Below are positions 8,176 through 40,533 of a DNA stretch of 64,000 bases, one piece after another; within the stretch, counting starts at the first letter, position 1, and each line of letters begins with the position of its first letter. Position numbers and translations under genes: made by a program. Source of the stretch: Ranitomeya imitator (Eukaryota); assembly GCF_032444005.1 (NCBI RefSeq), contig NC_091284.1:11780001-11844000 (forward strand). Direction: 5' to 3'. The notes under the pieces are model-generated. The model was not told where the DNA came from. It saw only the letters and a program-made list of their open reading frames with translations, and did not search any database.

Positions 8176-8698
<523 letters not shown>

Positions 8699-9111: not shown

Positions 9112-10737
<1,626 letters not shown>

Positions 10738-11174: not shown

Positions 11175-13680
11175 GCCACACCACCCGGCGGTGCCCCCAG
11201 GCCTACACACCACCCGGCGGTGCCCCCAGGCCTACACACCACCCGGCTGTGCCCCAGCCCTAAACACCACCCGGCTGTGCCCCAGCCCTAAACACCACCC
11301 GGGGGTGCCCCCAGCCCTAAACACCACCCGGCGGTGCCCCCAGCCCTAAACACCACCCGGGGGTGCCCAAGCCCTAAACACCACCCGGGGGTGCCCCCAG
11401 CCCTAAACACCACCCGGGGGTGCCCCAGCCCTAAACACCACCCGGCGGTGCCCCCAGGCCTACACACCACCCGGGGGTGCCCCCAGCCCTAAACACCACC
11501 CGGCGGTGCCCCCAGCCCTACACACCACCCGGCTGTGCCCCAGCCCTAAACACCACCCGGGGGTGCCCCCAGCCCTAAACACCACCCGGGGGTGCCCCCA
11601 GCCCTAAACACCACCCGGGGGTGCCCCCAGCCCTAAACACCACCCGGGGGTGCCCCAGGCCTACACACCACCCGGCGGTGCCCCCAGGCCTACACACCAC
11701 CCGGCGGTGCCCCCAGCCCTAAACACCACCCGGGGGTGCCCCAGCCCTACACACCACCCGGCGGTGCCCCAGCCCGACACACCATCCGGCGGTGCCCCCA
11801 GGCCTACACACCACCCGGCGGTGCTCCAGCCCTACACACCACCCGGCGGTGCCCCAGCCCGACACACCATCCGGCGGTGCCCCAGCCCTAAACACCACCC
11901 GGGGGTGCCCCCAGCCCTACACACCACCCGGCGGTGCCCCAGCCCTACACACCATCCGGCGGTGCCCCAGCCCTACACACCACCCGGGGGTGCCCCCAGC
12001 CCTACACACCACCCGGCGGTGCCCCAGCCCTACACACCACCCGGCGGTGCCCCAGCCCTACACACCACCCGGCGGTGCCCCCAAGCCTACACACCACCCG
12101 GCGGTGCCCCAGCCCTACACACCATCCGGCGGTGCCCCCAAGCCTACACACCACCCGGCGGTGCCCCGGATTTACAATCCACCCGGCGGTGCCCCCGACC
12201 CTACACACCAACCGGCGGTGCCCCCAGGCCTACACACCACCCGGCGGTGCCCCCAGGCCTACACACCACCCGGCGGTGCCCCCAGGCCTACACACCACCC
12301 GGCGGTGCCCCCAGGCCTACACACCACCCGGCGGTGCCCCCAGGCCTACACACCACCCGGCGGTGCCCCCAGGCCTACACACCACCCGGCGGTGCCCCCA
12401 GGCCTACACACCACCCGGCGGTGCCCCCAGGGCTACACACCACCCGGCGGTGCCCCAGCCCTACACACCATCCGGCGGTGCCCCAGCCCTACACACCACC
12501 CGGCGGTGCCCCCAAGCCTACACACCACCCGGCGGTGCCCCGGACCTACATTCCACCCGGCGGTGCCCCAGGCCTACACACCACCCGGCGGTGCCCCCAG
12601 CCCTAAACACCACCCGGGGGTGCCCCAGCCCTACACACCACCCGGCGGTGCCCCAGCCCGACACACCATCCGGCGGTGCCCCCAGGCCTACACACCACCC
12701 GGCGGTGCTCCAGCCCTACACACCACCCGGCGGTGCCCCAGCCCGACACACCATCCGGCGGTGCCCCAGCCCTAAACACCACCCGGGGGTGCCCCCAGCC
12801 CTACACACCACCCGGCGGTGCCCCAGCCCTACACACCATCCGGCGGTGCCCCAGCCCTACACACCACCCGGGGGTGCCCCCAGCCCTACACACCATCCGG
12901 TGGTGCCCCAGCCCTACACACCACCCGGCGGTGCCCCAGCCCTACACACCACCCGGCGGTGCCCCAGCCCTACACACCATCCGGCGGTGCCCCCAAGCCT
13001 ACACACCACCCGGCGGTGCCCCAGCCCTACACACCATCCGGCGGTGCCCCCAAGCCTACACACCACCCGGCGGTGCCCCGGATTTACAATCCACCCGGCG
13101 GTGCCCCCGACCCTACACACCAACCGGCGGTGCCCCCAGGCCTACACACCACCCGGCGGTGCCCCCAGGCCTACACACCACCCGGCGGTGCCCCCAGGCC
13201 TACACACCACCCGGCGGTGCCCCCAGGCCTACACACCACCCGGCGGTGCCCCCAGGCCTACACACCACCCGGCGGTGCCCCCAGGCCTACACACCACCCG
13301 GCGGTGCCCCCAGGGCTACACACCACCCGGCGGTGCCCCAGCCCTACACACCATCCGGCGGTGCCCCAGCCCTACACACCACCCGGCGGTGCCCCCAAGC
13401 CTACACACCACCCGGCGGTGCCCCGGACCTACATTCCACCCGGCGGTGCCCCCGACCCTACACACCAACCGGCGGTGCCCCCAGGCCTACACACCACCCG
13501 GCGGTGCCCCCAGGCCTACACACCACCCGGCAGTGCCCCCAGGCCTACACACCACCCGGCGGTGCCCCCAGGGCTACACACCACCCGGCGGTGCCTCGGC
13601 CCTACATTCCAGCCGGTGGTGCCCCCGGCCCTACACAACACCCGGCGGTGCCCCCGACCCTACACAACACAACACCCGGT
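11175..13680. repeat. 26-28-bp GC-rich minisatellite in the first POLQ coding intron
   Basis: Unit cacaccacccggcggtgccccagcccta, about 90 copies. Confidence 0.95.
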
Positions 13681-13722
13681 GCCGCTCTCGATGCGGTCCT
13701 GGTGATACTGCCACACACCCAC

Positions 13723-14320
13723 CGCTGCCGCTCAGGCTGCCGTCCAGCAGGGAGCGTTCCAGACCAGATGGTGGCGCCAGCACTGATGAGGAGAGGACGG
13801 CGCCTGCGCTCTCCCGCCTGCTCCCCTTCTGCAGGATGGACGCCTGCTGCCCCGGGCTGAACAGGATGTAGTCTCTGGTATCAGCCGCTCCTCCGCTGGC
13901 CCCGGGGGACGTCCTGCTGCTTGGAGCTCGGGGCTTGTGGTGTGTGTGGAGGACGACCTTCCTGCTCCTGGAGGGGCTGGTGGGGTCCTCGGAGCCGGAG
14001 AGGGTGGAGTCTCTGGTGTCAGCCGCTCCTCCGCTGGCCCCGGGGCCCCGCAGTCTGGCGGACGTCCTGCTGCTCGGAGCTCGGGGCTTGCGGTGTGTGC
14101 GGAGCGTGGGCCTCTTACATGTGGAGGGACTCGTGGGGTCCTCGGACCCCGGACTGGACAGGGAGTGCTGACGCACACGTTTGCGGCTGTTGTGGGGGCC
14201 CAGGACCCCCTTTGTGCTGGAGGCCGCCATCTTGGGATCATTTTCCTTGGCCGTTAATCCTCCGAACAAGATGGCGGCCAGGCTGGCTTTGGTTGCCGGG
14301 GGTCCGTGCGGCTTCTGCAT
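13723..14320 (-). CDS. POLQ: POLQ first coding exon (199 codons, extended N-terminus)
   Basis: ATG in gccgtcgccATG context; open to a phase-1 AGCG|gtgggt donor that fits exon 2; C-terminal LSSSVLAPPSGLERSL aligns with human exon-1 LSGSVLSPPPGLGRCL; polypyrimidine acceptor with exon start at 14428. Confidence 0.8.
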
Positions 14321-14749
14321 GGCGACGGCGGCTCGTCCGGTCACTCAGCGTATGGCGGCGGCTCCTGGAGACGTGGTCCCCGCGGGCGTCCTCTGAGGGG
14401 GCCACATTACCAGGACAGGGGGCCGGAGCTGCGGAGGGAAAAGAGGAGGAAGAAGGTGACAAGCCGCCATCTTATCATCACCCAGATCCCCGGAAACTAC
14501 AACTCCCAGCATGTCCAGCGCCCAGACCAATGCTCTGTGCAGGAGTGACTGGTAAGCAGCAGCACAGCGCCCCGAAATGTGAGAGCAGACCCCATAATGA
14601 GCCCCTCAGATAACAGATCGGTCACCATGACAACCAGATTACAGGGGAGACTGAACCACTGCCGCAGATCTGCGGCTACACTGGATATCACCCCTGCTCT
14701 ACACAATGGTCTGTCCCGGCTCTTCATCCGGGGGTCACATGGTCTTTAC

Positions 14750-14815
14750 CTCCTCCACAGCCGGGACCTCCGCGGCCAGAGCCGCCCGTCAGGTTTAAAC
14801 TACGCGCGAGCCCGA
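14750..14815 (-). other. POLQ: Putative non-coding leader exon of POLQ
   Basis: GAG|gtaaag donor at 14750/14749 inside the CpG island, no ATG, would splice to the acceptor at 14428; 5' end approximate. Confidence 0.5.
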
Positions 14816-15049
14816 CACTGACGTCATCACAGGAGCGACCGTGACCGCGGCGCCGCCATGTCTGTTGTGGGCAGCTGCGTCACGTGACAAGTTAGATAGC
14901 GGCTACCTGAGGGCAGCTGGGAGGGGGTGAACGGTCACCGCGGCAGCTGAAGGGTTAATGACGTGTGTACTAATGTGAGGGGAATCCGGAGGTCAGCACG
15001 CAGGGGGTTAACGAGCTGTGACGTCATCTGGTCCCTATGTTATAAGTAG

Positions 15050-15092
15050 GCAGCAGGGAGGGGGGAAGCAGCGGCGGCGGAGCCGGGAGCAG
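15050..15092 (+). other. Putative non-coding first exon of the unknown coiled-coil gene
   Basis: CAG|gtgagg donor at 15092/15093 just downstream of TATA-like and CRE motifs; start approximate. Confidence 0.5.
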
Positions 15093-15139
15093 GTGAGGGC
15101 GGCAGCAGCTGGTGGAGGGAGGACCGGGATACCGCGGGG

Positions 15140-15315
15140 GTGTCCTCATATACCGCGTCCTGTGTCCTCATATACCGCGTCCTGTGTCCTCATATACCGC
15201 GTCCTGTGTCCTCATATACCGCGTCCTGTGTCCTCATATACCGCGTCCTGTGTCCTCATATACCGCGTCCTGTGTCCTCATATACCGCGTCCTGTGTCCT
15301 CATATACCGCGTCCT
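15140..15315. repeat. 22-bp minisatellite
   Basis: gtgtcctcatataccgcgtcct, about 8 copies. Confidence 0.92.
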
Positions 15316-15499
15316 CTGCGGCTGCACCTCCACATTACTGCAAAGTGACCGGGGGCCCGTGCACACGATGCGGCTTGTTGGCTCCTTGTAGACGTGAGCC
15401 GGTGTCACATTTACTGAGTCAGATATTACTAATAATACAGAACGTGCAGAAATGTAAGAAAATGTCAGCAGTGTATGGTCCTGACGATACCTAGTGTAC

Positions 15500-17655
15500 A
15501 CACATACTCCAGAGCTGCACTCACTATTCTGCTGGTGCAGTCACTGTGCACATACATTACATTACTGATCCCGAGTTACATCCTGTATTATACCCCAGAG
15601 CTGCACTCACTATTCTGCTGGTGCAGTCACTGTGTACATACATTACATTACTGATCCTGAGTTACATCCTGTATTATACCCCAGAGCTGCACTCACTATT
15701 CTGCTGGTGCAGTCACTGTGTACATACATTACATTACTGATCCTGAGTTACATCCTGAATTATACTCCAGAGCTGCACTCACTATTCTGCTGGTGCAGTC
15801 ACTGTGTACATACATTACATTACTGATCCCGAGTTACCTCCTGCATTATACTCCAGAGCTGCACTCACTATTCTGCTGGTGCAGTCACTGTGTACATACA
15901 TTACATTACTGATCCCGAGTTACATCCTGTATTATACTCCAGAGCTGCACTCACTATTCTGCTGGTGCAGTCACTGTATACATACATTACATTACTGATC
16001 CTGAGTTACATCCTGTATTATACTCCAGAGCTGCACTCACTATTCTGCTGGCGCAGTCACTGTGTACATACATTACATTACTGATCCTGAGTTACATCCT
16101 GTATTATACTCCAGAGCTGCACTCACTATTCTACTGGTGCAGTCACTGTATACATACATTACATTACTGATCCCGAGTTACATCCTGTATTATACCCCAG
16201 AGCTGCACTCACTATTCTGCTGGTGCAGTCACTGTGTACATACATTACATTACTGATCCCGAGTTACATCCTGTATTATACTCCAGAGCTGCACTCACTA
16301 TTCTGCTGGTGCAGTCACTGTGTACATACATTACATTACTGATCCCGAGTTACCTCCTGTATTATACTCCAGAGCTGCACTCACTATTCTGCTGGTGCAG
16401 TCACTGTATACATACATTACATTACTGATCCCGAGTTACATCCTGTATTATACCCCAGAGCTGCACTCACTATTCTGCTGGTGCAGTCACTGTGTACATA
16501 CATTACATTACTGATCCCGAGTTACATCCTGTATTATACTCCAGAGCTGCACTCACTATTCTGCTGGTGCAGTCACTGTGTACATACATTACATTACTGA
16601 TCCCGAGTTACCTCCTGCATTATACTCCAGAGCTGCACTCACTATTCTGCTGGTGCAGTCACTGTGTACATACATTACATTACTGATCCCGAGTTACATC
16701 CTGTATTATACTCCAGAGCTGCACTCACTATTCTGCTGGTGCAGTCACTGTATACATACATTACATTACTGATCCTGAGTTACATCCTGTATTATACTCC
16801 AGAGCTGCACTCACTATTCTGCTGGCGCAGTCACTGTGTACATACATTACATTACTGATCCTGAGTTACCTCCTGTATTATACTCCAGAGCTGCACTCAC
16901 TATTCTACTGGTGCAGTCACTGTGCACATACATTACATTACTGATCCTGAGTTACATCCTATATTATACTCCAGAGCTGCACTCACTATTCTGCTGGCGC
17001 AGTCACTGTGTACATACATTACATTACTGATCCTGAGTTACCTCCTGTATTATACTCCAGAGCTGCACTCACTATTCTGCTGGTGCAGTCACTGTGTACA
17101 TACATTACATTACTGATCCTGAGTTACATCCTGTATTATACCCCAGAGCTGCACTCACTATTCTGCTGGTGCAGTCACTGTCACATTACATTACTGATCC
17201 CGAGTTACCTCCTGTATTATACCCCAGAGCTGCACTCACTATTCTGCTGGTGCAGTCACTGTGTACATACATTACATTACTGATCCCGAGTTACATCCTG
17301 TATTATACTCCAGAGCTGCACTCACTATTCTGCTGGTGCAGTCACTGTGTACATACATTACTGATCCTGGGTTACATCCTGTATTATACTCCAGAGCTGC
17401 ACTCACTATTCTGCTGGTGCAGTCACTGTGTACATACATTACTGATCCTGGGTTACATCCTGTATTATACTCCAGAGCTGCACTCACTATTCTGCTGGTG
17501 CAGTCTCTGTGTACATACATTACATTACTGATCCTGAGTTACCTCCTGTATTATACCCCAGAGCTGCACTCACTATTCTGCTGGTGCAGTCACTGTGTAC
17601 ATACATTACTGATCCTGAGTTACATCCTGTATTATACCCCAGAGCTGCACTCACT
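15500..17655. repeat. 86-bp tandem repeat, about 25 copies
   Basis: Unit ccagagctgcactcactattctgctggtgcagtcactgtgtacatacattacattactgatcc...; ORF starts recur every 86 nt. Confidence 0.95.
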
Positions 17656-17676
17656 TATTTTCTGTCTATAGCATTA

Positions 17677-17747
17677 ATGATGGCGCAGAGTTTGTATGAG
17701 AGATGTTCCTGGTTCCCGTCTGTTCTGAGGGAGAAGAAGAGTTGTAG
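17677..17747 (+). CDS. Unknown gene, first coding exon (MMAQSLYERCSWFPSVLREKKSC)
   Basis: ttttctgtctatag acceptor (exon start 17672), ATGATGG start, AG|gtaatt donor, phase 2. Confidence 0.65.
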
Positions 17748-17915
17748 GTAATTAGAATGACGTTCTGATCTAGCACATACAGGATCTTGTAGTGTTGGGG
17801 CCTCTGCTTTCTGTCCTTGTTTTTTCCTGGGGATATTGCTTCTCTGGTGCTGGATGCACAGTTACACAGCTCATTAGTGATCAGGTTCCTGATTGCCACG
17901 TTCTCTTGTTCTCAG

Positions 17916-18021
17916 ACGTGGCTGCTGCGATCTGTTGCGGTTCTGCAGGACCCGGAGTCACATTCTGGACTTTCCTCCAGACTCCCCTTGTGTCCATGAG
18001 GCTGTGAAGCTGCTGGACGAG
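17916..18021 (+). CDS. Unknown gene exon (RGCCDLLRFCRTRSHILDFPPDSPCVHEAVKLLDE)
   Basis: ttctcttgttctcag acceptor, GAG|gtaatg donor, only one open frame, phase 2/0. Confidence 0.7.
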
Positions 18022-18151
18022 GTAATGGTGCGGCCCCTTGTCCTGCTCCCTGTAGCCCCCAGTATCGGTACCATCACTGCCCCTGTACCAGCTTCTTGCA
18101 GATGGCGGCTGCGCTCGGGCCGTGTCCTGTAGATGTCGGGATTCTCTGCAG

Positions 18152-18237
18152 GATTCGTTTTCTCTGGCCGCGGCGCTCTCCTCAGCCTTCCTCCCCAGAC
18201 GCCATGAAGAAGAGTGCAGACCCCGAGGGGCCTCAAG
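18152..18237 (+). CDS. Unknown gene exon, preferred option (DSFSLAAALSSAFLPRRHEEECRPRGAS)
   Basis: AAG|gtgagt donor, phase 0/2 bridges its neighbours; an alternative candidate lies at 18516-18598. Confidence 0.45.
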
Positions 18238-18743
18238 GTGAGTGTGACCCTCATTAACCCCATTAACCCTTGCTGTGTGCAGACTGGTTCCCCATAGATG
18301 GGTGAGGCTGTGATTGATGACTTCACTGCATGGACGCCCTGGATCGGAGAGAACTCTGATCCTGGATTTGTCGCCCCAATGGGTGCTGATCCTTGTGTGC
18401 ATGGGCCCATCCAAGCCCCCGGCACTGTGATCACTGGCACGGACAATCCGGACCCTGATAACGGACCCCTGGGAGGTGTTGGAGCACATAGTTAAAATGT
18501 ATGTGGACCCTACAGGCGCCCCCACTATGTCTGACTTGTGAAGATGAATGTGACTGCTCTGAAATCTACGTCTGGCGCCACCTACTGGATAAATCTGCGT
18601 ACGTTTAGCGCCACCTACCCTAATATTGTAAGTGACCTCCCGGCGTTGACGGCAACACAGCATAGATCTGGTAACCCCTCCCCTGTCGCTGATGGCGGCA
18701 GTGTAGATCCGGTGACCCCCGTGTTCACTGCTCTTATACACAG

Positions 18744-18840
18744 GTGCCGTCTGCTCCGCGGACTGTTCTTCCAGATGGATCTGATGCGTCACTGGCATAA
18801 AATGACGACCGTGGGCCCCTGGATCCAAGACTTCCTAGAG
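18744..18840 (+). CDS. Unknown gene exon (CRLLRGLFFQMDLMRHWHKMTTVGPWIQDFLE)
   Basis: cag acceptor, GAG|gtaggt donor, phase 2/0. Confidence 0.7.
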
Positions 18841-18909
18841 GTAGGTGACGTGGGTGGTGGGCGCGCGGAGGTCCTGACGTGACCTTTTCTCACTGCCTCT
18901 TACGTACAG

Positions 18910-18987
18910 GTTTGTGCTGCTGGTTTGGTTTCCCGGCCGCGGGGCTTGTGCCTGTCCTGCAGGGGGCGCCAGGCGGTGTTGTCAGAG
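18910..18987 (+). CDS. Unknown gene exon (VCAAGLVSRPRGLCLSCRGRQAVLSE)
   Basis: Pyrimidine tract + cag, GAG|gtgagt donor, 78 nt, phase 0/0; preceded by a 69-nt intron. Confidence 0.6.
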
Positions 18988-19176
18988 GTGAGTAGAGGAA
19001 CCCCTCTTTAGTTGTTCTGGTGGGGGTCCGTCCGTGATGCTGGATTGTACATGGAGGTGGTTCCCCCGTCATATAAACACACCACCAATCCCCTGATGTG
19101 CGGGGGCAGGGGGCTCTCGGCATATGGGGGGGATCTCATTAGACTGTGTGTAACGCCTCATGTTCTTTCTCGTCAG

Positions 19177-19267
19177 GTGTCTGCAGGTATAACGCACAAA
19201 CCCAGCAATCGACAGGCGGCAGCGGTTCGGAGGTCAGAGGAGCGCAGAGCTGCTGCAGACCTATTTA
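19177..19267 (+). CDS. Unknown gene exon (VSAGITHKPSNRQAAAVRRSEERRAAADLF)
   Basis: ttctttctcgtcag acceptor, TA|gtgagt donor, phase 0/1; fits the phase-1 acceptor at 21658. Confidence 0.5.
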
Positions 19268-19554
19268 GTGAGTTGTGGGGGAGGGAGTCACAATTATCTG
19301 ATATCGGGGGTCCGCCTGGCTCAAGTATAGGGGTCCCAGATATCCTGTTTTAACCATCAGCAGATTAATGTATCAGAAACTACCAATATCTGAGTAAAGG
19401 GGTAAAAATCCGATCGCCTCCTGTCTCCAGCAGAATATCTGTGCGTTCCGGAGAAGAGGGGACACGACAACTTATCGGGGGCCGAAGTGCGAACCGGCCA
19501 CAGACTGAAACCCGTGAGTGACGGCGGAAGAAACCGCAAACCTGATAATGACAC

Positions 19555-20565
19555 ATACACACCGGGCCTCGCCCACGCTGCTCCCTGATACACCGGGCGT
19601 CACCCACACTGCTCCCTGATACACCGGGCCTCGCCCACACTGCTCCCTGATACACCGGGCGTCACCCACACTGCTCCCTGATACACCGGGCGTCACCCAC
19701 ACCATCGCCTGATACACCGGGCCTCGCCCACACTGCTCCCTGATACACCGGGCGTCACCCACACCATCGCCTGATACACCGAGCCTCGCCCACACTGCTC
19801 CCTGATACACCGGGCGTCACCCACACTGCTCCCTGAAACACCGGGCGTCACCCACACCATCGCCTGATACACCGGGCCTCGCCCACACTGCTCCCTGATA
19901 CACCGGGCGTCACCCACACCATCGCCTGATACACCGAGCCTCGCCCACACTGCTCCCTGATACACCGGGCGTCACCCACACTGCTCCCTGAAACACCGGG
20001 CGTCACCCACACCATCGCCTGATACACCGGGCCTCGCCCACACTGCTCCCTGATACACCGGGCGTCACCCACACCATCGCCTGATACACCGGGCCTCGCC
20101 CACACTGCTCCCTGATACACCGGGCCTCGCCCACACTGCTCCCTGATACACCGGGCGTCACCCACACTGCTGCCTGATACACCGGGCGTCACCCACACCA
20201 TCGCCTGATACACCGGGCCTCGCCCACACTGCTCCCTGATACACCGGGCGTCACCCACACCATCGCCTGATACACCGGGCCTCACCCACACTGCTCCCTG
20301 ATACACCGGGCCTCACCCACACTGCTCCCTGATACACCGGGCCTCGCCCACACTGCTCCCTGATACACCGGGCGTCACCCACACTGCTCCCTGATACACC
20401 GGGCGTCACCCACACCATCGCCTGATACACCGGGCCTCGCCCACACTGCTCCCTGATACACCGGGCGTCACCCACACCATCGCCTGATACACCGGGCGTC
20501 ACCCACACTGCTCCCTGATACACCGGGCCTCGCCCACACTGCTCCCTGATACACCGGGCCTCACC
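19555..20565. repeat. 28-bp minisatellite
   Basis: Unit ctgatacaccgggcgtcacccacactgctcc with variants. Confidence 0.93.
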
Positions 20566-20699
20566 GCGGAGAACATGGGGCCAACCGTCAGGATAGAAAC
20601 TTGCTACTAATATACAAGTGATATTACTGAGAAGTGGAGACCCTGTAATTTTAGTGGGGGGGCTGAGTGAGACAAAAGTCTCCACTGCTCTGCTGCCCC

Positions 20700-20920
20700 A
20701 TAACTGCAGGGTCCAGACCTCCTCTGGTATCAGCACAAACTGCGCCCCGCCAGGAGCTTCGTGGCCGAGCAGGTGCATGCAGCCGTACATCACCAAGCAC
20801 AATGGCGAGCGTTTGATGGAGTGGTGTAAATCTGCCATCACTGGACTGTGGAGGAGACCGGTTCTGTGCAGTGACGGATCGCACTTCTCTGATGGAGTAG
20901 TCTGGGTTTGGTGATGGGGG
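20700..20920 (+). mobile_element. Tc1 transposase remnant
   Basis: PYITKHNGERLMEWCK...VLCSDGSHF resembles the Tc1 HTH-to-DDE segment. Confidence 0.6.
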
Positions 20921-21134
20921 GGGGGGGTTCAATGTTGAGGATTCGCCCGGGGCTGTAGGAAGTTTCCCCCATCATTGGTGTCTGTTCCTTCCTGGGTCCT
21001 GGCGGCTTCAGGAGCACAACAGTGTGGAGGCGGCCAACAAAGTGATGGCTTAGCCAGCCCCCTCCTCAGAGCTGATGACTAGACAGAGGGGTGGCTATTG
21101 GGACGAACGTCAGCAAGTAGTGACAGTCTTAGGC

Positions 21135-21482
21135 TGACCCTCTCCTGGGCCCCGCAGGGTCTGCTGTCCTCTCCTGGGCCCCGCAGGGTCTGCTGTCCTC
21201 TCCTGGGCCCCGCAGGGTCTGCTGTCCTCTCCTCTCCTGGGCCCCGCAGGGTCTGCTGTCCTCTCCTCTCCTGGGCCCCGCAGGGTCTGCTGTCCTCTCC
21301 TCTCCTGGGCCCCGCAGGGTCTGCTGTCCTCTCCTCTCCTGGGCCCCGCAGGGTCTGCTGTCCTCTCCTCTCCTGGGCCCCGCAGGGTCTGCTGTCCTCT
21401 CCTCTCCTGGGCCCCGCAGGGTCTGCTGTCCTCTCCTCTCCTGGGCCCCGCAGGGTCTGCTGTCCTCTCCTCTCCTGGGCCC
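21135..21482. repeat. 29/34-bp minisatellite mimicking the downstream splice acceptor
   Basis: 10 copies of ccccgcagggtct within ctctcctgggccccgcagggtctgctgtcctctc. Confidence 0.9.
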
Positions 21483-21641
21483 TCCTCAGAGCTGATGTAT
21501 AATGTGTCTTTGGGGGTGGCTCGCCTATTGGGACGAGCGTCGTCCTCCTTCACACTCAGAGCACCGCTCGGGTCACATGCTGACGTGGGCACAGGGGCAA
21601 AGAGTGAAGTTCTGTGGCTGACCCTCACTCTCTCCCCGCAG

Positions 21642-21810
21642 GGTCTCCCCTCCTCAGCCCCGCACGGCGTCCTCTCCTCGGCTCAGCAGCTGAAGAATTC
21701 TCTGAAGAAGGATTTGGAGACTCATCAGCTTTATCTCAGTGCCATAGAGACCCGGCTGAGCGGCCTGGAGCGCCGGGCACAGGACGTCACCAAGCGCCTG
21801 GAGCGAGCCA
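21642..21810 (+). CDS. Unknown gene exon, coiled coil (SAQQLKNSLKKDLETHQLYLSAIETRLSGLERRAQDVTKRLERA)
   Basis: Heptad pattern; tandem acceptors at 21642 (phase 0) and 21658 (phase 1); CCA|gtaagt donor, phase 1. Confidence 0.8.
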
Positions 21811-21821
21811 GTAAGTGAGGG

Positions 21822-22085
21822 TACTACCCCCCATCATCCTCCTTCACCTGATGCACTACTCCCCCATCATCCTCTTTCATCTGATGCACTACTCACCCCC
21901 CATCATCCTCCTTCATCTGATGCACTACTCACCCCCATCATCCTCCTTCATCTGATGCACTACTCACCCCCATCATCCTCCTTCATCTGATGCACTACTC
22001 ACCCCCATCATCCTCCTTCATCTGATGCACTACTCACCCCCATCATCCTCCTTCATCTGATGCACTACTCCCCCCATCATCCTCC
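21822..22085. repeat. 35-bp minisatellite filling a 286-bp intron
   Basis: Unit tactcacccccatcatcctccttcatctgatgcac. Confidence 0.92.
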
Positions 22086-22096
22086 CTGTGCTGCAG

Positions 22097-22242
22097 ATCT
22101 GGAGCTGGAAGCCATTAAACAAGGCAGCGTCGCCCTGAAGACCCTCGTGGACGAGCCGACCTCTTCTCCGGTGATAGAACTTGTGGACGGTCTGTGGGAG
22201 GGTTTACTGCGGTGCGGAGTGACGGGGCAGAGCGCGTGGCCG
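22097..22242 (+). CDS. Unknown gene exon (NLELEAIKQGSVALKTLVDEPTSSPVIELVDGLWEGLLRCGVTGQSAWP)
   Basis: ctgcag acceptor, CCG|gtatgt donor, phase 1/0. Confidence 0.75.
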
Positions 22243-22435
22243 GTATGTACAGTGCAGAACCTGAGGAAGGGAGTACACCCCCGGAGTCAATAGATTGCAG
22301 AAGCTTCTGGTCAAGGAATCATTGTCATGATATGTAAATGACAGCTCGGGGGGTGTACTTACTTACTGTGCATGGTCATGTCCACGGCTGCAGGCGTTGG
22401 TTGCACTTCTTATATTGGACTTTTCCTCCCTTCAG

Positions 22436-22558
22436 GGTTTGTGCAGAAGGAAAGACCCCGAGCGGCGCGGGGCCAGGGATCATCCAGCAGGTGGCGGCAG
22501 CGTGCACCCGAGGGAAGACGTGTGGCGCGGACTGTCCAGCTGTCAGCGGCACGTGGAT
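22436..22558 (+). CDS. Unknown gene exon (GLCRRKDPERRG...EDVWRGLSSCQRHVD)
   Basis: ttttcctcccttcag acceptor, GAT|gtgagt donor, 123 nt, phase 0/0. Confidence 0.7.
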
Positions 22559-22917
22559 GTGAGTGAGGGGCGCGGGGGACGCGATATCAGCCCCCAATAT
22601 AAGGGGAGGTGCAGGGCAGAAAAGGGATCAGACAACTCCCAGTTTCATCATTCACTAAGATCTCTGCTTGCTGCCGGTGAATTGAACACATGGAGGGTCT
22701 GCTGATCACAGCTGCAGCTCTGGTACAATGTGGTCTAGAAGCAATTGTAGCAAACCCTCAGCTGTGAGTCAGTGTTGGGCCTGTGCCGGTTCTCGGCCTG
22801 TAATCTGCTGCTGCTGCGGCCGACCCTTGTGCGCAGGCTAGTCCAGAGTGGGTCTGCTGGGATTTGTAGTTCTCCAGTATCCGACTCACATCTTGCACTT
22901 TGTCTTCTCCTTTCCAG

Positions 22918-23004
22918 GTCCTCTTACAGCAGATAACGAGGCAAATTGACCAGATGGAAAGCGACATAAAGGTGACGTCCGCGCTGCGCCATAACGCCAG
23001 GTAG
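22918..23004 (+). CDS. Unknown gene terminal coding exon (VLLQQITRQIDQMESDIKVTSALRHNAR*)
   Basis: Long pyrimidine tract + cag; TAG at 23002-23004; AATAAA at 23108-23113. Confidence 0.7.
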   Translation, partial: VLLQQITRQIDQMESDIKVTSALRHNAR

Positions 23005-23333
23005 CGAGGCCGCGGAGCGCCCGTCAGTCATCTCACCGCGGCGCGCCCATCAGCCATCTTCATCTCACTGAAAAGCACTAGTCTCAGATTTCATAATTGT
23101 CATATTTAATAAACGTATTTATTAACTGCAGGAGCTGCGCTCGATCTGAGTTTCTCATGAACCGCAGAGATTGTCTTTCATCCGCCGTCACTGGCGGCCG
23201 CACAGCCTGAGAAATGGCCGCAAGCTGAAATGCTGCCACTAGGGGGCGCTCTGTATACTGAGGGCTGTAGTCACACCTGTGCGCAGAGCTCCCCCTAGTG
23301 GTGGCCGCTGACGGGCACAATCCAGACTTTTAA

Positions 23334-23596
23334 CCCTGTTATGACCATATAACAAACACGACCGCACAGGGGCCGACTATCCGCCGGCGGGAGCAGTGAC
23401 ACCTCTGGCTCCAATCTGACGTTTAACCATTTAGATGCCGTGGTCAGTCACGAACAGCAGGTTTTGAAGCGATTGTTGGTTGCACTAGCAGCAGCGGTCT
23501 GCGGGGGGCGCTGAAGCCCTTCATAGGAAACCGTCAATTACACCAAATCCTACAGAACTGGTAAAAAATAATTATACTGTCCTGGTCATGAATGGG
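23334..23596. mobile_element. TTAA-flanked piggyBac-type MITE
   Basis: TTAA-CCCTGTTATGACCA ... TGGTCATGAATGGG-TTAA. Confidence 0.75.
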
Positions 23597-28592: not shown

Positions 28593-30485
28593 GGAAGGAC
28601 CCAGCGGCCTCCACCTGGACAGCATCGGCACTGCCAGAACTGCTTCAACAAGCGCTGCAATGCTCCTATCAATACTGGTGTCTCCTGTATTGTAATCAAC
28701 TGCAAGCTGCACTGCGGTGCCACCTTCCACATGTGCAAAGAGGATGAACATCATCTTCTGTGCCCCAACGAGTGGGTGCCTTGCTTGAACTCTGTATTTG
28801 GCTGCCCTTTTTCAATGTCCCGATGCAAACAGGCGAAACATTTGAGGGTCTGTCCAGCAAGCGTGGTCTGCTGCTCCATGGATTGGAACCGATGGCCGAC
28901 TATTCTCAAGCCTCAGCCACTTTACAAGAATCTTCTGCAGGAAGAGGTTGGAGAGGAATGTCTGGACGTGGCCCTGACATTGAGAGACCAGAAGATTCTC
29001 TTTAGCTCCCTGAAAATGGCCGAACTTTATCCGGAACTCTCCGAGGATCCAAAAGACACAATCATTTTAGGTCCATCTGAGTCAGAGCAGGAGGAGGGTG
29101 CAGTCGGGGGTTCAGATCCAGAGAAGGTGGACAATGGTCAGATGGTTGGGCTGACTCAGTATGAGCGAGAAGCCTTGGCCCGGGGACAGGGCGACATGGA
29201 TTTAGAAAAGTTCAAAGTGTGGGACACTATATTTAGCAAAGAGATGAAAGCGGCCAAGTATCTGCAGTCTGGTACTGGTCCGACTGGCAGCAAACTGCCT
29301 GACGCAAGCAAAACACCCGGCAACAAACCCAAAACAGAAACCGAGAACAACCAAGACCCGAACGAAGGCAAAAAAGCAGAAGAAGCGGCTAAGCTGTCGA
29401 TGGTCGATCTTGAGAAGACAGGGTTTGCTCCGTGGCAAGAGGGCGTCCTGGAGAGACTGAAAACTGAGGTGGATTGTGGGAGTTTCAACATGTACCTGGT
29501 GCACCATGGCAGTATGCTGATAAGATTCGGGCAGATTGCCGCGTGCACCCCCAAAGAGAAGGACTTTGTTTACGGCAAACTGGAAGCCCAAGAGGTGAAG
29601 ACGGTGTGCACCTTCAAGATACCGACCAGCTACTGCGGCAAGAGGGCGAAACTTGGGGATGACAGCAGCAAGAAGGAGAAAGCTGAGAAACTGATGGACA
29701 CCTCCGACCTAGGAGTCCCAGTAGACAAGTTGCCACTGACCGAAACTATCAGCACTACTTTATTAGTGGCTCTCGAGAGGGAGGTGAGGGGTCACGCCGT
29801 GTCTCAGATGAAAGCGCTCGATGGCTTGCTCATTGACTTAGGAACCCAGACTTATGACTTCGGAGTTGATCCTTTCACCCACAAGACTGTTCTATTAGAC
29901 CTCCTGGCCGAGAAGAAGATGAGAAGTTTAGGTCTGTACTTGGACATCGAGAGCGAGTGTGTGAGCACCAGACACAACAAGTCCAACTCCTCCTTTACCT
30001 TCTCCTGTAACCTCTTCTTCCGCCGGGACGAGATTGCGTCACATTTCAGGAACGTCCACTCGGACATACAGTCCTGCCTGGACGGGTGGTTCCAGCAACG
30101 TTGCCCTCTTTCCTACTTGGGTTGCACCTTCATACTGAACAGGTTTCAGGCCGCGGGGCAAAGGTCACAGGTCATCTACAGCAATCACATGAAGACGTTT
30201 GCAATGAAACCGCTGGTGGACGAGACTTTATATGAAGGTGTAAGACCCAATCTGTCCCGAAGCCACCGAGGGAAAAGCAAGGACTCTCTCAGTAACCTGC
30301 CGCTGGAGGTCCTGCAGCACATCGCTGGCTTCCTGGACAGCTTCAGCCTGTGTCAGCTCTCACAGGTGTCGTCCCTCATGAGAGATATCTGCGCCTCGCT
30401 GTTACAGGAGAGGGGGATGGTCCATCTGTACTGGGAGAAGAAGACTTACTCCCATGGAGGAACGTCATGGAGATGCCGTAAGAAG
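28593..30485 (+). CDS. FBXO40: F-box protein 40, main exon (TRAF-type Zn finger to F-box)
   Basis: GRTQRPPPGQHRHCQNCFNKRC...CGATFHMCKEDEHHLLCP...CPASVVCCSMDWNRWP; F-box LSNLPLEVLQHIAGFLDSFSLCQLSQVS; 1893 nt, AAG|gtgggt donor. Confidence 0.96.
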
Positions 30486-31344
30486 GTGGGTCACAGAAAA
30501 CATAGATACTATGGAGGCAGATCACGCCCCTGGAGAGGAGGCCCAGCTCTGATTGGTCCATTTTACTTCAGGGTGGTGCAGACCACTCCCCAGAGGAACG
30601 GAAGTGTCCGCAGTTAGGGTCATGGAAAGAGGCAGGAAACAAACATGAGGTCATTCTGCCACCATAAAGGAAGTACCGTCTTATTACTAAACATATATCC
30701 ACATTTGCAATGATTAGAAATGTTGCATTACATAAAAACCTCACAATTAGTTTTGATTAAAAATCTTCCGTCCATACAGCTCCTCCGCGGACCTATGCGT
30801 CTCCATAGTTACATACTACAAACAATCTCTGTGTAGTCTGATATAACCTTCGTATTCTCATCCATCGGTACCATCATTCTGAATTCTTCCACCAGCGCAG
30901 GAAGGCGAGAACTGGGGCAGAAATTACTGCATCAGATCTTCCGTGTGTGAATTTACCAGATGGAAGAAAGTCTGACAACACAATCAGATTGTAGTCTGTT
31001 ACCATGGAGACGCGAAGGGGAAACCAAATGGTATAAGATTTTTATTGAAAACTATTTGTAGATTTGTTTTATTTTCTATTTAAGATGATTTAGATTAAAA
31101 TTTCCTACGTTTTGCTGATATTTACCCCCGGACAGAAGCGCTCGCTGCTTGTTTTCCCTGGCACTCCTTTTCCACAATCCTTGGACCATTGTAGTCTTGC
31201 TTAGAGTTTCGCCATCTAATTCTGAGAGGGATGAGGCCTACAAGAGTTGACCCCTCTCCCCAAAAGCTCCACAACAGCCATTTTTTTGCTAAGCACCATT
31301 TTTGATTAACCCTTCATGTTGCCATGCGTTCCTTGTGTTTTCAG

Positions 31345-31545: not shown

Positions 31546-32497
31546 TCGGCCACACCCACTGCAGGGGCGGAGCTTGGGAAAGTCATGCGCTAAGGAGTTC
31601 AGAAGCTCCGCCCCCTCACCCGCCCACAGAGCTTTATAGAAAACTAGAACGAAATGGAACCGGATGATTACAACGTTGGGATTTCCATCAATATCAAGGA
31701 AGCGGAAAAGTTTTACAACTTTCCCCTACAGTATGATCCTGATTCATTATTTGTGTTAGGTTATTTCATTTTTTTGTGTTATACTGTAGCATTCATTGGT
31801 GGTTTTTGTTCCAAATTCTTGAAAATGGCATCCGCGGGTACAAGAATTCAGAGAATTGCTCAAAATAAAGAAAGAATGTTCTTCCTATTTGTCTCCGATT
31901 CACCATTTGTGCTTTTTTTAAGACACTTTTCTTTTTACCGTAGTTGTGGTATTAGTTGCTGTTTTTTGTGCCACAATTGCTCCCGCCATTCATTAATTTT
32001 GCATAAAGTAAACAATCGCCGTTATTTTCATGTTTTGCAATAAGTCATAAAATGGTGCAAAAATTGTGTGAAATTCCTAGTGCCCAGAACATCACTCTGG
32101 GGCGAAACGGGACGACGATTGCAACAAATATTCAAACGTTTTAAAAAGTCGCCAGTGATGAATTAGCTGGAAACGTAAAACTCTGCTCACAATGGTGAAT
32201 GCAAGAAAAAAGACAGGAGAACATAAAACAGACTTTACAAAGATGCAAATAAAAAAAAAAAAGAACGAGATGCAAATGAAAAACCTGGAAAAACACCAAA
32301 AACGAGACAGAAACAGGTGCAAATGCGATAATGAATCGCGTCCTTTGTCTTTTACTTTCTTTACAACTCTTTAGATGCACAATTCGATAACTTTTCGCTA
32401 ATATTTCTAACATATAAAAAAATAAATTAAGCACTCCGGGAGACTATGGGCAAGAAAAAAGTGACTTTTTAGAAAATCCGCAAATAATGAATTGACA

Positions 32498-35127
32498 GGG
32501 AAAAATGGTAACAAAGGGAAAAATGGTAACAAAATTCTCATTGGGGTCTGTTACAAACCCCCAAATATAACAGAAAGCATGGAAAGTCTACTTCTAAAGC
32601 AGATAGATGAAGCTGCAACCCATAATGAGGTCCTGGTTATGGGGGACTTTAACTACCCGGATATTAACTGGGAAACAGAAACCTGTGAAACCCATAAAGG
32701 CAACAGGTTTCTGCTAATAACCAAGAAAAATTATCTTTCACAATTGGTGCAGAATCCAACCAGAGGAGCAGCACTTTTAGACCTAATACTATCTAATAGA
32801 CCTGACAGAATAACAAATCTGCAGGTGGTTGGGCATTTAGGAAATAGCGACCACAATATTGTGCAGTTTCACCTGTCTTTCACTAGGGGGACTTGTCAGG
32901 GAGTCACAAAAACATTGAACTTTAGGAAGGCAAAGTTTGAACAGCTTAGAGATGCCCTTAATCTGGTAGACTGGGACAATGTCCTCAGAAATGAGAATAC
33001 AGATAATAAATGGGAAATGTTTAAGAACATCCTAAATAGGCAGTGTAAGCGGTTTATACCTTGTGGGAATAAAAGGACTAGAAATAGGAAAAACCCAATG
33101 TGGCTAAACAAAGAAGTAAGACAGGCAATTAACAGTAAAAAGAAAGCATTTGCACTACTAAAGCAGGATGGCACCATTGAAGCTCTAAAAAACTATAGGG
33201 AGAAAAATACTTTATCTAAAAAACTAATTAAAGCTGCCAAAAAGGAAACAGAGAAGCACATTGCTAAGGAGAGTAAAACTAATCCCAAACTGTTCTTCAA
33301 CTATATCAATAGTAAAAGAATAAAAACTGAAAATGTAGGCCCCTTAAAAAATAGTGAGGAAAGAATGGTTGTAGATGACGAGGAAAAAGCTAACATATTA
33401 AACACCTTCTTCTCCACGGTATTCACGGTGGAAAATGAAATGCTAGGTGAAATCCCAAGAAACAATGAAAACCCTATATTAAGGGTCACCAATCTAACCC
33501 AAGAAGAGGTGCGAAACCGGCTAAATAAGATTAAAATAGATAAATCTCCGGGTCCGGATGGCATACACCCACGAGTACTAAGAGAACTAAGTAATGTAAT
33601 AGATAAACCATTATTTCTTATTTTTAGTGACTCTATAGCAACGGGGTCTGTTCCGCAGGACTGTCGCATAGCAAATGTGGTGCCAATATTCAAAAAGGGC
33701 TCTAAAAGTGAACCTGGAAATTATAGGCCAGTAAGTCTAACCTCTATTGTTGGTAAAATATTTGAAGGGTTTCTGAGGGATGTTATTCTGGATTATCTCA
33801 ATGAGAATAACTGTTTAACTCCATATCAGCATGGGTTTATGAGAAATCGCTCCTGTCAAACCAATCTAATCAGTTTTTATGAAGAGGTAAGCTATAGACT
33901 GGACCACGGTGAGTCATTGGACGTGGTATATCTCGATCTTTCCAAAGCGTTTGATACCGTGCCGCACAAGAGGTTGGTACACAAAATGAGAATGCTTGGT
34001 CTGGGGGAAAATGTGTGTAAATGGGTTAGTAACTGGCTTAGTGATAGAAAGCAGAGGGTGGTTATAAATGGTATAGTCTCTAACTGGGTCGCTGTGACCA
34101 GTGGGGTACCGCAGGGGTCAGTATTGGGACCTGTTCTCTTCAACATATTCATTAATGATCTGGTAGAAGGTTTACACAGTAAAATATCGATATTTGCAGA
34201 TGATACAAAACTATGTAAAGCAGTTAATACAAGAGAAGATAGTATTCTGCTACAGATGGATCTGGATAAGTTGGAAACTTGGGCTGAAAGGTGGCAGATG
34301 AGGTTTAACAATGATAAATGTAAGGTTATACACATGGGAAGAGGGAATCAATATCACCATTACACACTGAACGGGAAACCACTGGGTAAATCTGACAGGG
34401 AGAAGGACTTGGGGATCCTAGTTAATGATAAACTTACCTGGAGCAGCCAGTGCCAGGCAGCAGCTGCCAAGGCAAACAGGATCATGGGGTGCATTAAAAG
34501 AGGTCTGGATACACATGATGAGAGCATTATACTGCCTCTGTACAAATCCCTAGTTAGACCGCACATGGAGTACTGTGTCCAGTTTTGGGCACCGGTGCTC
34601 AGGAAGGATATAATGGAACTAGAGAGAGTACAAAGGAGGGCAACAAAATTAATAAAGGGGATGGGAGAACTACAATACCCAGATAGATTAGCGAAATTAG
34701 GATTATTTAGTCTAGAAAAAAGACGACTGAGGGGCGATCTAATAACCATGTATAAGTATATAAGGGGACAATACAAATATCTCACTGAGGATCTGTTTAT
34801 ACCAAGGAAGGTGACGGGCACAAGGGGGCATTCTTTGCGTCTGGAGGAGAGAAGGTTTTTCCACCAACATAGAAGAGGATTCTTTACTGTTAGGGCAGTG
34901 AGAATCTGGAATTGCTTGCCTGAGGAGGTGGTGATGGCGAACTCAGTCGAGGGGTTCAAGAGAGGCCTGGATGTCTTCCTGGAGCAGAACAATATTGTAT
35001 CATACAATTATTAGGTTCTGTAGAAGGACGTAGATCTGGGGATTTATTATGATGGAATATAGGCTGAACTGGATGGACAAATGTCTTTTTTCGGCCTTAC
35101 TAACTATGTTACTATGTTACTATGTTA
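32498..35127 (+). mobile_element. CR1 LINE, 5'-truncated, uninterrupted ORF2 (partial APE plus complete RT)
   Basis: 840-codon open frame to 35014 with GDFN, SDH, YRPVSLTS, GVPQGSVLGP and FADD motifs; 3' UTR ending in (TATGTTAC)3. Confidence 0.96.
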
Positions 35128-36499: not shown

Positions 36500-37405
36500 C
36501 AGTGGGGGAAACAAGTATTCGATCCCTTGCTGATTTTGTAAGTTTGCCCACTGACAAAGACATGAACAGTCTGTAATTTTAATTGTAGGTTAATTTTAAC
36601 ATTGAGAGACAGAATATCAAAAATAAAATCCATAAAGTCACATTGAATAAATTATATAAATGTATTTACATTTTGCAGTGAGAAATAAGTATTTGATCCG
36701 TCTGGCAAACAAGACTTAATACTTGGTGGTAAAACCCTTGTTGGCAAGCCCAGCAGTCAGACGTTTTCTGTAGTTGATGATGAGGTTTGCGCACTTGTCA
36801 GGAGGAATTTTGCTCCTCTCCTCTTTGCAGATCATCTCTAAATCATTAAGATTTTGAGGCTGTCACTTGGCAACTTGGAGCTTTACCTCCCTCCATAGGT
36901 TTTCTATGGGATGAAGGTCTGGAGACTGGCTAGGCCACTCCATGACCTTAATTTGCTTGTTGCCTTGGCTGTATGTTTTGGGTCATTGTCTTGCTGGAAG
37001 ACCCAGCCATGACCCATTTTTAATGTCCTGGCGGAGGGAAGGAGGTTGTCACTCAGGATTTTACGGTACACGGCTCCATCCATTGTCCCATTGATGCGGT
37101 GAAGTAGTCCTGTGCCCTTAGCAGAGAAACTCCCCCAAAACATAATGTTCCACCTCCATGCTTGACAGTGGGGATGGTGTTCTTTGGGTCATAGGCAGCA
37201 TTTCTCTTCCTCCAAACAAGGCGAGTTGAGTTAATGCCAAAGACCTCAATTTTCGTCTCATCTGACCACAGCACCTTCTCCCAATCACTCACAGGGTCAT
37301 CCAGGTGTTCTTTGGTAAACTTCAGACAGGTGCACATGTGTCTTCTTGAGCAGGGGGACCTTGCGGCACTGCAGCATTTTAAACCTTTATGGCGTAATGT
37401 GTTAA
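36500..37405 (-). mobile_element. Tc1 transposon, truncated
   Basis: TA-CAGTGGGGG terminus; WSDETKIE, KHGGG and QQDNDPKH motifs in broken frames. Confidence 0.85.
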
Positions 37406-37872
37406 TGTGAACACTCCAGGTTGGGTGTCCTTCTGCTGGATTGGGTTTAGTGGTAGACCTGTCGGTCCCTATTCTACTATTTCTACTGTGGTGAAATTGA
37501 TGCCACTTTGGTGGTGTCTGCCAGTAATTTTTGGAAATGTGAACACTCCTGTTTGGGTCTCCTTCATGTTGCCTGTAGCAGTATGCCTCAGACACCGTCA
37601 GGCCTCCACTGCCTTGGACTCAACTACCCGTGTTACTATCCTTACATTTTTCTGACAATGGTGGTCTACAAAACTGATATTTGTGCCACCTGAATGTGGC
37701 TCAGCATGAAAGCAGGGAGAGGTGTTACATGTGATATCAGGGGTCCCAGTACAGGAGGTCTACACCGATCCCTCAACCACCTCGTCTTACTGTGATGTTC
37801 TATTGAAAGCTGTAAATGCTGTCCCAGACCCCGATACCTCATGCCTGGCTGATTGTTGCAGTGCCATGTTAC

Positions 37873-39124: not shown

Positions 39125-39995
39125 TAACATAGTAACATAGTTAGTAAGGCCGAAAAGACATTTGTCCATCCAGTTCAGCCTATATTCCATCATAATAAAT
39201 CCCCAGATCTACGTCCTTCTACAGAACCTAATAATTGTATGATACAATATTGTTCTGCTCCAGGAAGACATCCAGGCCTCTCTTGAACCCCTCGACTGAG
39301 TTCGCCATCACCACCTCCTCAGGCAAGCAATTCCAGATTCTCACTGCCCTAACAGTAAAGAATCCTCTTCTATGTTGGTGGAAAAACCTTCTCTCCTCCA
39401 GACGCAAAGAATGCCCCCTTGTGCCCGTCACCTTCCTTGGTATAAACAGATCCTCAGCAAGATATTTGTATTGTCCCCTTATATACTTATACATGGTTAT
39501 TAGATCGCCCCTCAGTCGTCTTTTTTTCTAGACTAAATAATCCTAATTTCGCTAATCTATCTGGGTATTGTAGTTCTCCCATCCCCTTTATTAATTTTGT
39601 TGCCCTCCTTTGTACTCTCTCTAGTTCCATTATATCCTTCCTGAGCACCGGTGCCCAAAACTGGACACAGTACTCCATGTGCGGTCTAACTAGGGATTTG
39701 TACAGAGGCAGTATAATGCTCTCATCATGTGTATCCAGACCTCTTTTAATGCACCCCATGATCCTGTTTGCCTTGGCAGCTGCTGCCTGGCACTGGCTGC
39801 TCCAGGTAAGTTTATCATTAACTAGGATCCCCAAGTCCTTCTCCCTATCAGATTTACCCAGTGGTTTCCCGTTCAGTGTGTAATGGTGATATTGATTCCT
39901 TCTTCCCATGTGTATAACCTTACATTTATCATTGTTAAACCTCATCTGCCACCTTTCAGCCCAAGTTTCCAACTTATCCAGATCCATCTGTAGCA
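39125..39995 (-). mobile_element. CR1 LINE, short 5'-truncated copy, frameshifted
   Basis: Near-identical to 34255-35127; extra A in the GAAAAAAAGACG run; (TATGTTAC)2 tail. Confidence 0.95.
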
Positions 39996-40533
39996 GATGT
40001 GTAATGACAGGCCTCAAGGAGGTCATGGTTAGATGACTGGTGATGTGTAGTGACCAGCATCAGGGGGACAGGGCTGGATGAAAGTTGTGACCAGTATGGA
40101 GGTGGTGGAGAGGACAACGATGGAGGTGGGGGAGAGGCTAATGATGGAGGTGAGGGAGAGGACAATGATTTGATGCGGGAGGGGAGGAGGACAATTAGGG
40201 ATGTGGGGGATTGGCATGGGAGGAAGGTTGACTTATAATGGACTTATGAACAGGGGGAAGAGGATGTTAGATTTGGATGTAAAATGAATTGGGTGCTGGA
40301 GGAGGGTGCCAAGCCCCTGATAGTGTCCTCCTCCATCTTACAATTCATTGTGATGTTATCGGGGACTTAAAATTTATTGCGGAGTGGGAGCAGAGAGGGT
40401 AAGTTGGATAGGACACTTCATAATGAATTGAAAAGTGGAAGAAGACTCTGTCAGAGGCTTGTAATGAATTGGGAGGAGGCGGAGGATGCCTCAGTACCTG
40501 ATGACGTTTTCTTCCACCACCCAAATTCATTAA

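Follow-up and report, generated by a model that had tools for sequence, protein, structure and literature searches.

A very probable short paralogue of NDC80 encoded between POLQ and FBXO40 in Ranitomeya imitator and other frogs

A 64,000-nucleotide (nt) stretch of the Ranitomeya imitator genome (contig NC_091284.1 of assembly GCF_032444005.1, positions 11,780,001 to 11,844,000 of the forward strand; hereafter the window, with positions counted from its first letter) carries on its plus strand a spliced gene that lies between POLQ and FBXO40. A preliminary description of this DNA had placed in the interval a multi-exon protein-coding gene that lists of open reading frames (ORFs) miss, arranged head-to-head with POLQ. 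Both the gene and its setting are borne out, with splice junctions in four RNA runs, POLQ on the minus strand and an FBXO40 ORF downstream (28731–30617, plus strand; 94% identical to Phyllobates FBXO40). The same description could match the product to no known family; profile searches now assign it to NDC80/HEC1, and some of its orthologues are already labelled ‘kinetochore protein NDC80 homolog’ at NCBI. We consider it very probable, from sequence comparison, that this NDC80-like gene is a true, short NDC80 (HEC1) paralogue of frogs, and by the same comparisons the NCBI name reflects a real but unexplored similarity.

The gene model was drawn from a reading of positions 15000–23200 together with exon-frame tests, and was then fixed by RNA contigs, which came from the Logan contigs of four public runs (X1, X2, X5 and X11, from three studies) and were aligned over 17450–23200. 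Ten GT..AG junctions join 11 coding exons on the plus strand: 17747>17916 (in X2), 18021>18092 (in all four runs), 18237>18744, 18840>18910, 18987>19177, 19267>19431 (or 19434), 19513>21642 (three runs), 21810>22097, 22242>22436 and 22558>22918 (four runs). Checking the junctions against RNA, as the preliminary description had advised, has thus confirmed ten of them. The ATGATGG at 17677, the TAG at 23004 and the AATAAA at 23108 that it had named are all present on the plus strand, and its exon size range of 71–170 nt holds, the coding exons spanning 71–169 nt each; its count of about ten exons gives way to 11, and its product of about 345 amino acids (aa) to one of 397 or 398 aa. The coding sequence is 1197 nt long, encoding 398 aa with a pI of 9.2, or 1194 nt and 397 aa when the alternative acceptor of a NAGNAG site (cag/cag) at 19431/19434 is used. 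Splicing to 19431, seen in X2 and X11, yields ...F-T-E-Y... (398 aa), and splicing to 19434, seen in X1, yields ...F-K-Y... (397 aa). The NCBI entry ‘uncharacterized protein [Ranitomeya imitator]’ (P0001, 397 aa) equals the model except at this site, where it uses 19434.

The transcript was detected in all four of the RNA runs examined, at low depth over the gene, and the contigs extend to at least 23103, just 5′ of the AATAAA at 23108–23113. Alternative acceptors for exon 3 at 18102 or 18152 either break the frame or are contradicted by RNA, the true start being 18092, and a 63-nt candidate exon at 20710–20772 is skipped in three RNA runs. Separately, an X5 contig covering 18090–18629 continues unspliced past coding exon 3 into the next intron and shows several substitutions as well as a 9-nt deletion; an unspliced precursor, another allele or contaminating DNA could each account for it.

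A non-coding first exon, with a GT donor and without an ATG, is proposed from sequence at 15050–15093 (plus strand, like all exons that follow) as a 5′ untranslated region (UTR), and one of three words sampled from it occurs in one RNA run. Coding exon 1 (17672–17747) starts exactly where one RNA contig terminates, and contains the ATG at 17677 as well as a second, at 17680, in better context. The junctions place the remaining exons. The calponin-homology (CH)-like domain begins in exon 2 (17916–18021), which also matches the family profile, and continues through exon 3 (18092–18237), with a conserved CxC (C72/C74), and exon 4 (18744–18840), with the core tryptophans W125 and W134 that map to W178/W187 of NDC80, to end in exon 5 (18910–18987), which carries a conserved CxxC (C154/C157). 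Exon 6 (19177–19267) encodes a basic linker, and exon 7 (19431–19513) opens at the two NAGNAG acceptors, both of which are used in RNA. The first part of a highly conserved coiled coil is encoded by exon 8 (21642–21810), which aligns to human NDC80 ~293–340. That coiled coil ends in exon 9 (22097–22242) and is followed by a variable segment, which reaches into exon 10 (22436–22558), where a C-terminal helix begins and a conserved C364 is found. Exon 11 (22918–23130) encodes the rest of the helix and holds the TAG (23002–23004), the 3′ UTR and the AATAAA. Fifteen of the 18 cysteines fall within residues 1–232, such that the Cys-rich part of an earlier claim of a Cys/Trp-rich N-terminal half stands; both peptides that had been quoted in support of a coiled-coil C-terminal half are present in the product.

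Four introns loaded with tandem repeats were counted, among them the one that follows the proposed non-coding exon (intron 1) and the two that flank coding exon 8 (introns 7/8 and 8/9). A minisatellite in intron 7/8 (21139–21482, plus strand; ~10 copies of a 34-nt unit) carries in its unit the acceptor core of exon 8, ccccgcag/ggtct, and sets a series of decoy 3′ splice sites ~160–500 nt upstream of 21642, the only acceptor that the RNA uses. Most of intron 1 is occupied by an 86-nt tandem repeat (15504–17655; 25 copies, 95% alike); its words reach summed depths of 70,000–340,000 in the contigs of the RNA runs, which marks it as a very high-copy, transcribed repeat family of the R. imitator genome. 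Further intronic minisatellites lie at 15140–15315 (eight perfect copies of 22 nt), 19559–20565 (31/62/93-nt units over 1 kb) and 21828–22085 (seven copies of 35 nt).

Homology to NDC80 emerged from two family profiles, A1 (15 frog orthologues) and A2 (22 sequences), searched against PDB sequences. A1 matched a human NDC80 chain (9n9g) with E=1.7e-17, profile positions 44–320 aligning to chain residues 90–396, and also matched the isolated HEC1 CH domain (2igp, E=6.9e-8) and Ndc80-bonsai (2ve7, E=9e-8). With A2, the isolated HEC1 CH domain scored E=3.9e-9 at a bias of 0, the NDC80 CH domain E=2e-8 with zero composition bias, and the NDC80 coiled coil E=1.6e-5. Single sequences gave the same answer: that of R. 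imitator matched the NDC80 coiled-coil stretch with E=9e-5, that of Xenopus tropicalis the same stretch with E=1.5e-5, and that of Pelobates fuscus both the CH domain (residues 96–197) and the coiled coil with E=4.7e-8. Among PDB sequences neither A1 nor A2 matched any other protein of the NN-CH type, in which an NDC80/NUF2-type CH domain is followed by a coiled coil; NDC80 was the only one. Searches of Pfam and PDB with single exons returned nothing significant. The profiles thus identify an NDC80-type CH domain at residues ~44–146, and residues ~233–300 align with human NDC80 ~290–365 in both profiles and in each of the three single sequences, giving a divergent CH domain and a coiled coil in the arrangement of the NN-CH superfamily. 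As judged by these alignments, residues ~44–146 are homologous to the NDC80 CH domain and residues ~233–297 to the first NDC80 coiled-coil segment (human ~290–360). An earlier suggestion to screen the product against kinetochore proteins therefore pointed in the right direction, the family being NDC80.

Canonical NDC80 comprises a basic, Aurora B-regulated tail of ~80 residues, a CH domain whose ‘toe’ is basic, a long, loop-interrupted coiled coil shared with NUF2, and an end that tetramerises with SPC24/SPC25 (PMC5371998, PMC7614391). The frog protein is much shorter than human NDC80/HEC1 (PF03801), 397 aa as compared with 642 aa. Its homologous CH domain retains the core Trp pair (W125/W134, NDC80 W178/W187), the acidic EEE patch and the hydrophobic pattern, and its first coiled coil is ~31% identical to the human segment in the same heptad register. 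In place of the Aurora-B-regulated tail, the CH-like region is preceded by a basic, Cys-rich lead of 43 residues (9 K/R, 5 Cys), and the family profiles gave no alignment to NDC80 residues 1–86. Neither A1 nor A2 aligned significantly beyond NDC80 ~400, which takes in the loop, the distal coiled coil and the SPC24/SPC25 end; the frog protein is without all three and terminates ~100 residues past its first coiled coil. It also differs from NDC80 in its locus beside POLQ, in its much faster evolution and in the addition of a CxC...CxxC quartet, conserved in 14–16 of 17 aligned frog sequences and without counterpart in the aligned NDC80 residues. The quartet may bind zinc, linking a CH-domain loop to the segment that follows.

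The lysines through which human NDC80 contacts microtubules we take to be K89, K115, K123, K146, K156 and K166, a list that reportedly goes back to Ciferri et al. 2008. The profile maps them in R. imitator to S47, S71, Q79, R96, G105 and R113, respectively, subject to possible local alignment error, which leaves two of the six positions basic, one of them (R96) polymorphic (R96C).

Several known proteins offer comparisons. Ndc80-Bonsai/Dwarf (2ve7), engineered in shortened form, is, like the frog protein, a CH head joined to a short coiled coil (PMC5371998), and its NDC80 chimera is matched by the family profile at E of ~1e-8; Bonsai, however, was made by fusion and retains the globular end of SPC25, whereas the frog protein occurs in nature and contains nothing related to SPC24/25. 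NUF2, IFT81, IFT57, CLUAP1, CCDC22 and CCDC93 follow the same plan of a divergent N-terminal CH domain and a coiled coil (PMC5371998) but, unlike NDC80, gave no significant profile match in PDB. KKIP1, described as defining the trypanosome outer kinetochore, is likewise a strongly diverged NDC80/NUF2 relative recognised only by sensitive profiles (PMC5294786).

Conservation within the frog family is concentrated in the coiled coil, where mean pairwise identity is 71% over residues 233–297, as compared with 52% in the C-terminal helix and 33–39% in the other segments. These 65 residues form seven heptads with continuous 3–4 spacing; conservation is 0.90 at core and 0.77 at non-core positions, 14 residues are invariant in 22 sequences, and the sole variant within the segment in the RNA contigs is synonymous. 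The conservation of surface positions points to a specific partner rather than to a generic dimer. AlphaFold2 (AF2) models the helix at 231–287 with a predicted local distance difference test (pLDDT) score of ~94 and the C-terminal helix at 354–396 with ~90, at a predicted template modelling score (pTM) of 0.22.

The partner need not be NUF2 if the protein is an NDC80-derived adaptor in which the coiled coil and the C-terminal helix, as a homodimer or helical hairpin, bind a frog-specific protein. NN-CH plus coiled-coil proteins do act in non-kinetochore complexes, including IFT81/IFT57/CLUAP1, CCDC22/CCDC93 and HOOK. A surface almost as conserved as the core would fit a multi-helix or partner-binding surface, the second conserved helix (353–390) would supply the other element, and most of the microtubule-contact lysines are gone. 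Moreover, the nearest named clusters in an ESM Atlas feature search, with scores of ~0.8 that serve as leads only, were IFT57, CLUAP1, NUF2, CCDC22/93, IFT81 and NDC80, every one of the NN-CH plus coiled-coil kind, such that the language-model neighbours are IFT and CCDC proteins as much as NDC80/NUF2. Nevertheless, we regard a NUF2-independent adaptor as doubtful, given that the profiles match only NDC80 among solved NN-CH proteins, that the conserved stretch is homologous to the very NDC80 segment that pairs with NUF2, and that the low pTM gives no sign of the two helices packing together.

Orthologues were sought exhaustively with phmmer, using the 56 aa of exon 8 as query, and 12 frog proteins were returned. 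The genera with orthologues comprise Ranitomeya, Dendrobates, Anomaloglossus, Bufo, Rhinoderma, Engystomops and Leptodactylus together with Eleutherodactylus, Pristimantis, Dendropsophus, Pyxicephalus, Rana, Lithobates, Aquarana, Pseudophryne, Mixophyes, Pelobates and Xenopus (X. tropicalis LOC100491517), and so span Pipidae, Pelobatidae, Myobatrachidae, Ranoidea and Hyloidea. Protein searches found no homologue outside frogs in a database that includes caecilian proteomes, from which caecilian FBXO40 was retrieved. A word-indexed profile search also returned frogs only and missed canonical NDC80 as well, so that distant non-frog relatives are possible. All homologues found being anuran, the earlier proposal that the gene was possibly lost in mammals finds no support, and it is no less likely that the gene was gained on the lineage to frogs.

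An apparent second R. imitator copy (P0016, 64% identity) proved to be the same gene mis-modelled with frame-shifted exons. Gene models of orthologues range from 289 to 409 aa, and from 558 to 635 aa in those that look fused. The Rana temporaria (P0021, 558 aa) and Lithobates pipiens (P0010, 635 aa) models carry long N-terminal extensions; one A1 member has a Pfam KRAB-box match (E=7e-5), and P0021 is the only A1 member with an extension. These ranid extensions probably come from fusion to a gene model lying upstream and are not real domains.

The order POLQ (minus), NDC80-like gene (plus), FBXO40 is kept at the three loci checked, in X. tropicalis, Bufo bufo and Pelobates cultripes, and the family profile recovers every exon of the gene both in the window and at the Xenopus and Pelobates loci. 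Synteny among Xenopus, Pelobates and Bufo places the origin of the gene before these frog lineages diverged. The orientation of FBXO40 differs: in Ranitomeya and Bufo it shares the strand of the NDC80-like gene, and in X. tropicalis and Pelobates cultripes it is on the opposite one (window 28731–30617 compared with 19017–23433 of locus L001 and 31830–34291 of locus L002), which suggests an inversion or the use of a different FBXO40 copy. Outside frogs, FBXO40 loci were uninformative as to this order: that of Rhinatrema has no neighbour within 10 kb, and that of pigeon has neither POLQ nor an exon of the NDC80-like family within 10 kb.

On the other side of the gene, POLQ is marked by helicase-motif exons near 8536, 8328 and 4354 on the minus strand and by an exon-1 ORF at 13631–14344, and its start lies ~700–800 bp from the proposed first exon of the NDC80-like gene. 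The interval between the two first exons (14340–15049) is a candidate bidirectional promoter from its motif matches. It is moderately CpG-rich (observed/expected 0.8–1.05 at 14800–15300) and contains full cAMP response element (CRE) palindromes (TGACGTCA) at 14819 and 15019, the second of them 22 nt 5′ of a TATAAG at 15041 that sits just upstream of the proposed first exon, as well as an E-box at 14881 and a CCAAT at 14527. A motif scan between the two genes found no E2F or cell cycle genes homology region (CHR) match; the cell-cycle or repair role that had been read from the shared promoter was pure inference and is unsupported.

A CRE next to a TATA-like box is seen in many CREM-dependent testis promoters, and the arrangement found here would suit a germline or early-embryo kinetochore variant, active in oocyte, testis or cleavage stages, that modulates attachment or takes part in centromere-drive conflict. 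Such a role would explain rapid evolution, and the gene does diverge much faster than its neighbour: identity to R. imitator is 55% in Bufo and 30% in Xenopus, as compared with 82% and 69% for FBXO40. Within R. imitator, the RNA contigs hold nine non-synonymous and five synonymous coding variants, a crude ratio of non-synonymous to synonymous polymorphism (pN/pS) of ~0.6 that is in keeping with the same idea. However, a transcript present in every one of the four runs, from three studies, does not suggest a narrow germline pattern, and the protein is without the part needed for canonical kinetochore recruitment. We therefore think a germline kinetochore variant unlikely.

Low RNA depth, the weak constraint in the polymorphism data, little conservation in the N-terminal half and differences among species in the gene models could together be taken to mean that the gene is a decaying duplicate, transcribed from the CpG-rich promoter of POLQ and without a protein function of its own. 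This is the explanation that we rank last, as very improbable: frame, splice sites and position have been kept across Xenopus, Pelobates and neobatrachian lineages, and a 65-aa coiled coil with the identity and invariant residues described above is incompatible with neutral decay.

Other observations concern the surroundings of the gene. In POLQ intron 1, a GC-rich (0.73) tandem repeat at 11650–13870 is open in several frames and rich in P/G/T/H. An ORF of 840 aa at 32492–35014 (plus strand) resembles the reverse transcriptase of a long interspersed nuclear element (LINE), a label given from reading its translation. A second ORF is a fragment of this LINE-like element, and two more, one of them within a POLQ intron, were labelled in the same way as Tc1/mariner transposase-like remnants; these three lie at 39487–40026, 9587–10255 and 37053–37595 (all minus strand).

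Several results weigh against the view that the frog gene encodes a working NDC80 relative that pairs with NUF2. The R. imitator protein is unmatched by Pfam PF03801 (Ndc80_HEC), for which the best family member reaches E=0.0092, below the cut-off. AF2 models its N-terminal half with pLDDT <50 from alignments of either 15 or 22 sequences, such that the CH fold is argued from sequence profiles and not from structure; a Foldseek search with the second model (22 sequences) gave no usable match. The N-terminal half of the X. tropicalis protein is barely alignable (26% identity over 69 CH-like residues, with the core Trp pair unrecovered), and the CH domain may accordingly be dispensable or decaying. 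The pN/pS value given above indicates weak overall constraint, and pairing with NUF2 is deduced only from the homology of the coiled-coil segment.

With these points in mind, we offer a joint reading of the NDC80-like protein, possible and still short of probable, as an untethered module that pairs through its coiled coil with NUF2, binds the microtubule lattice more weakly or differently and may carry a zinc-binding quartet. Because tethering through SPC24/SPC25 would be impossible, the protein would not serve as a kinetochore arm that bears load. Its working part would be the seven-heptad coiled coil, pairing with a conserved partner, since core and surface positions are conserved alike; NUF2 would be the most likely partner because it partners the homologous segment of NDC80. 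Lattice binding by the CH domain would probably be weakened or changed, as this domain evolves fast and four of the six microtubule-contact lysines have been lost. The outcome would be either a soluble microtubule binder resembling the NDC80/NUF2 head or a titrator of NUF2. Taken further, frogs would possess a second, NDC80-derived ‘headpiece-only’ module, encoded divergently from POLQ and perhaps stabilised by zinc, that pairs with NUF2 without SPC24/SPC25 and either binds spindle microtubules away from the kinetochore or tunes NUF2; put in this full form, the proposal is speculative, and we would not call it likely.

In conclusion, the NDC80-like gene is present in public annotation under uninformative or inconsistent names and is functionally undescribed, and full-text searches turned up no paper that deals with LOC100491517, with a divergent partner of POLQ or with an NDC80 paralogue in frogs or other vertebrates. 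The kinetochore has NDC80 as its main microtubule receptor, and we are aware of no paralogue in vertebrates; a truncated one kept throughout frog evolution should be of interest to kinetochore and spindle biologists. It would provide a natural experiment on the separable parts of NDC80, with one extremely conserved coiled coil and no SPC24/SPC25 route. The Xenopus orthologue, LOC100491517, would be open to depletion or add-back in egg extract, a standard system. If the proposal holds, kinetochore-microtubule attachment in a classic spindle model would have in the headpiece-only module a regulator that has so far gone unrecognised.

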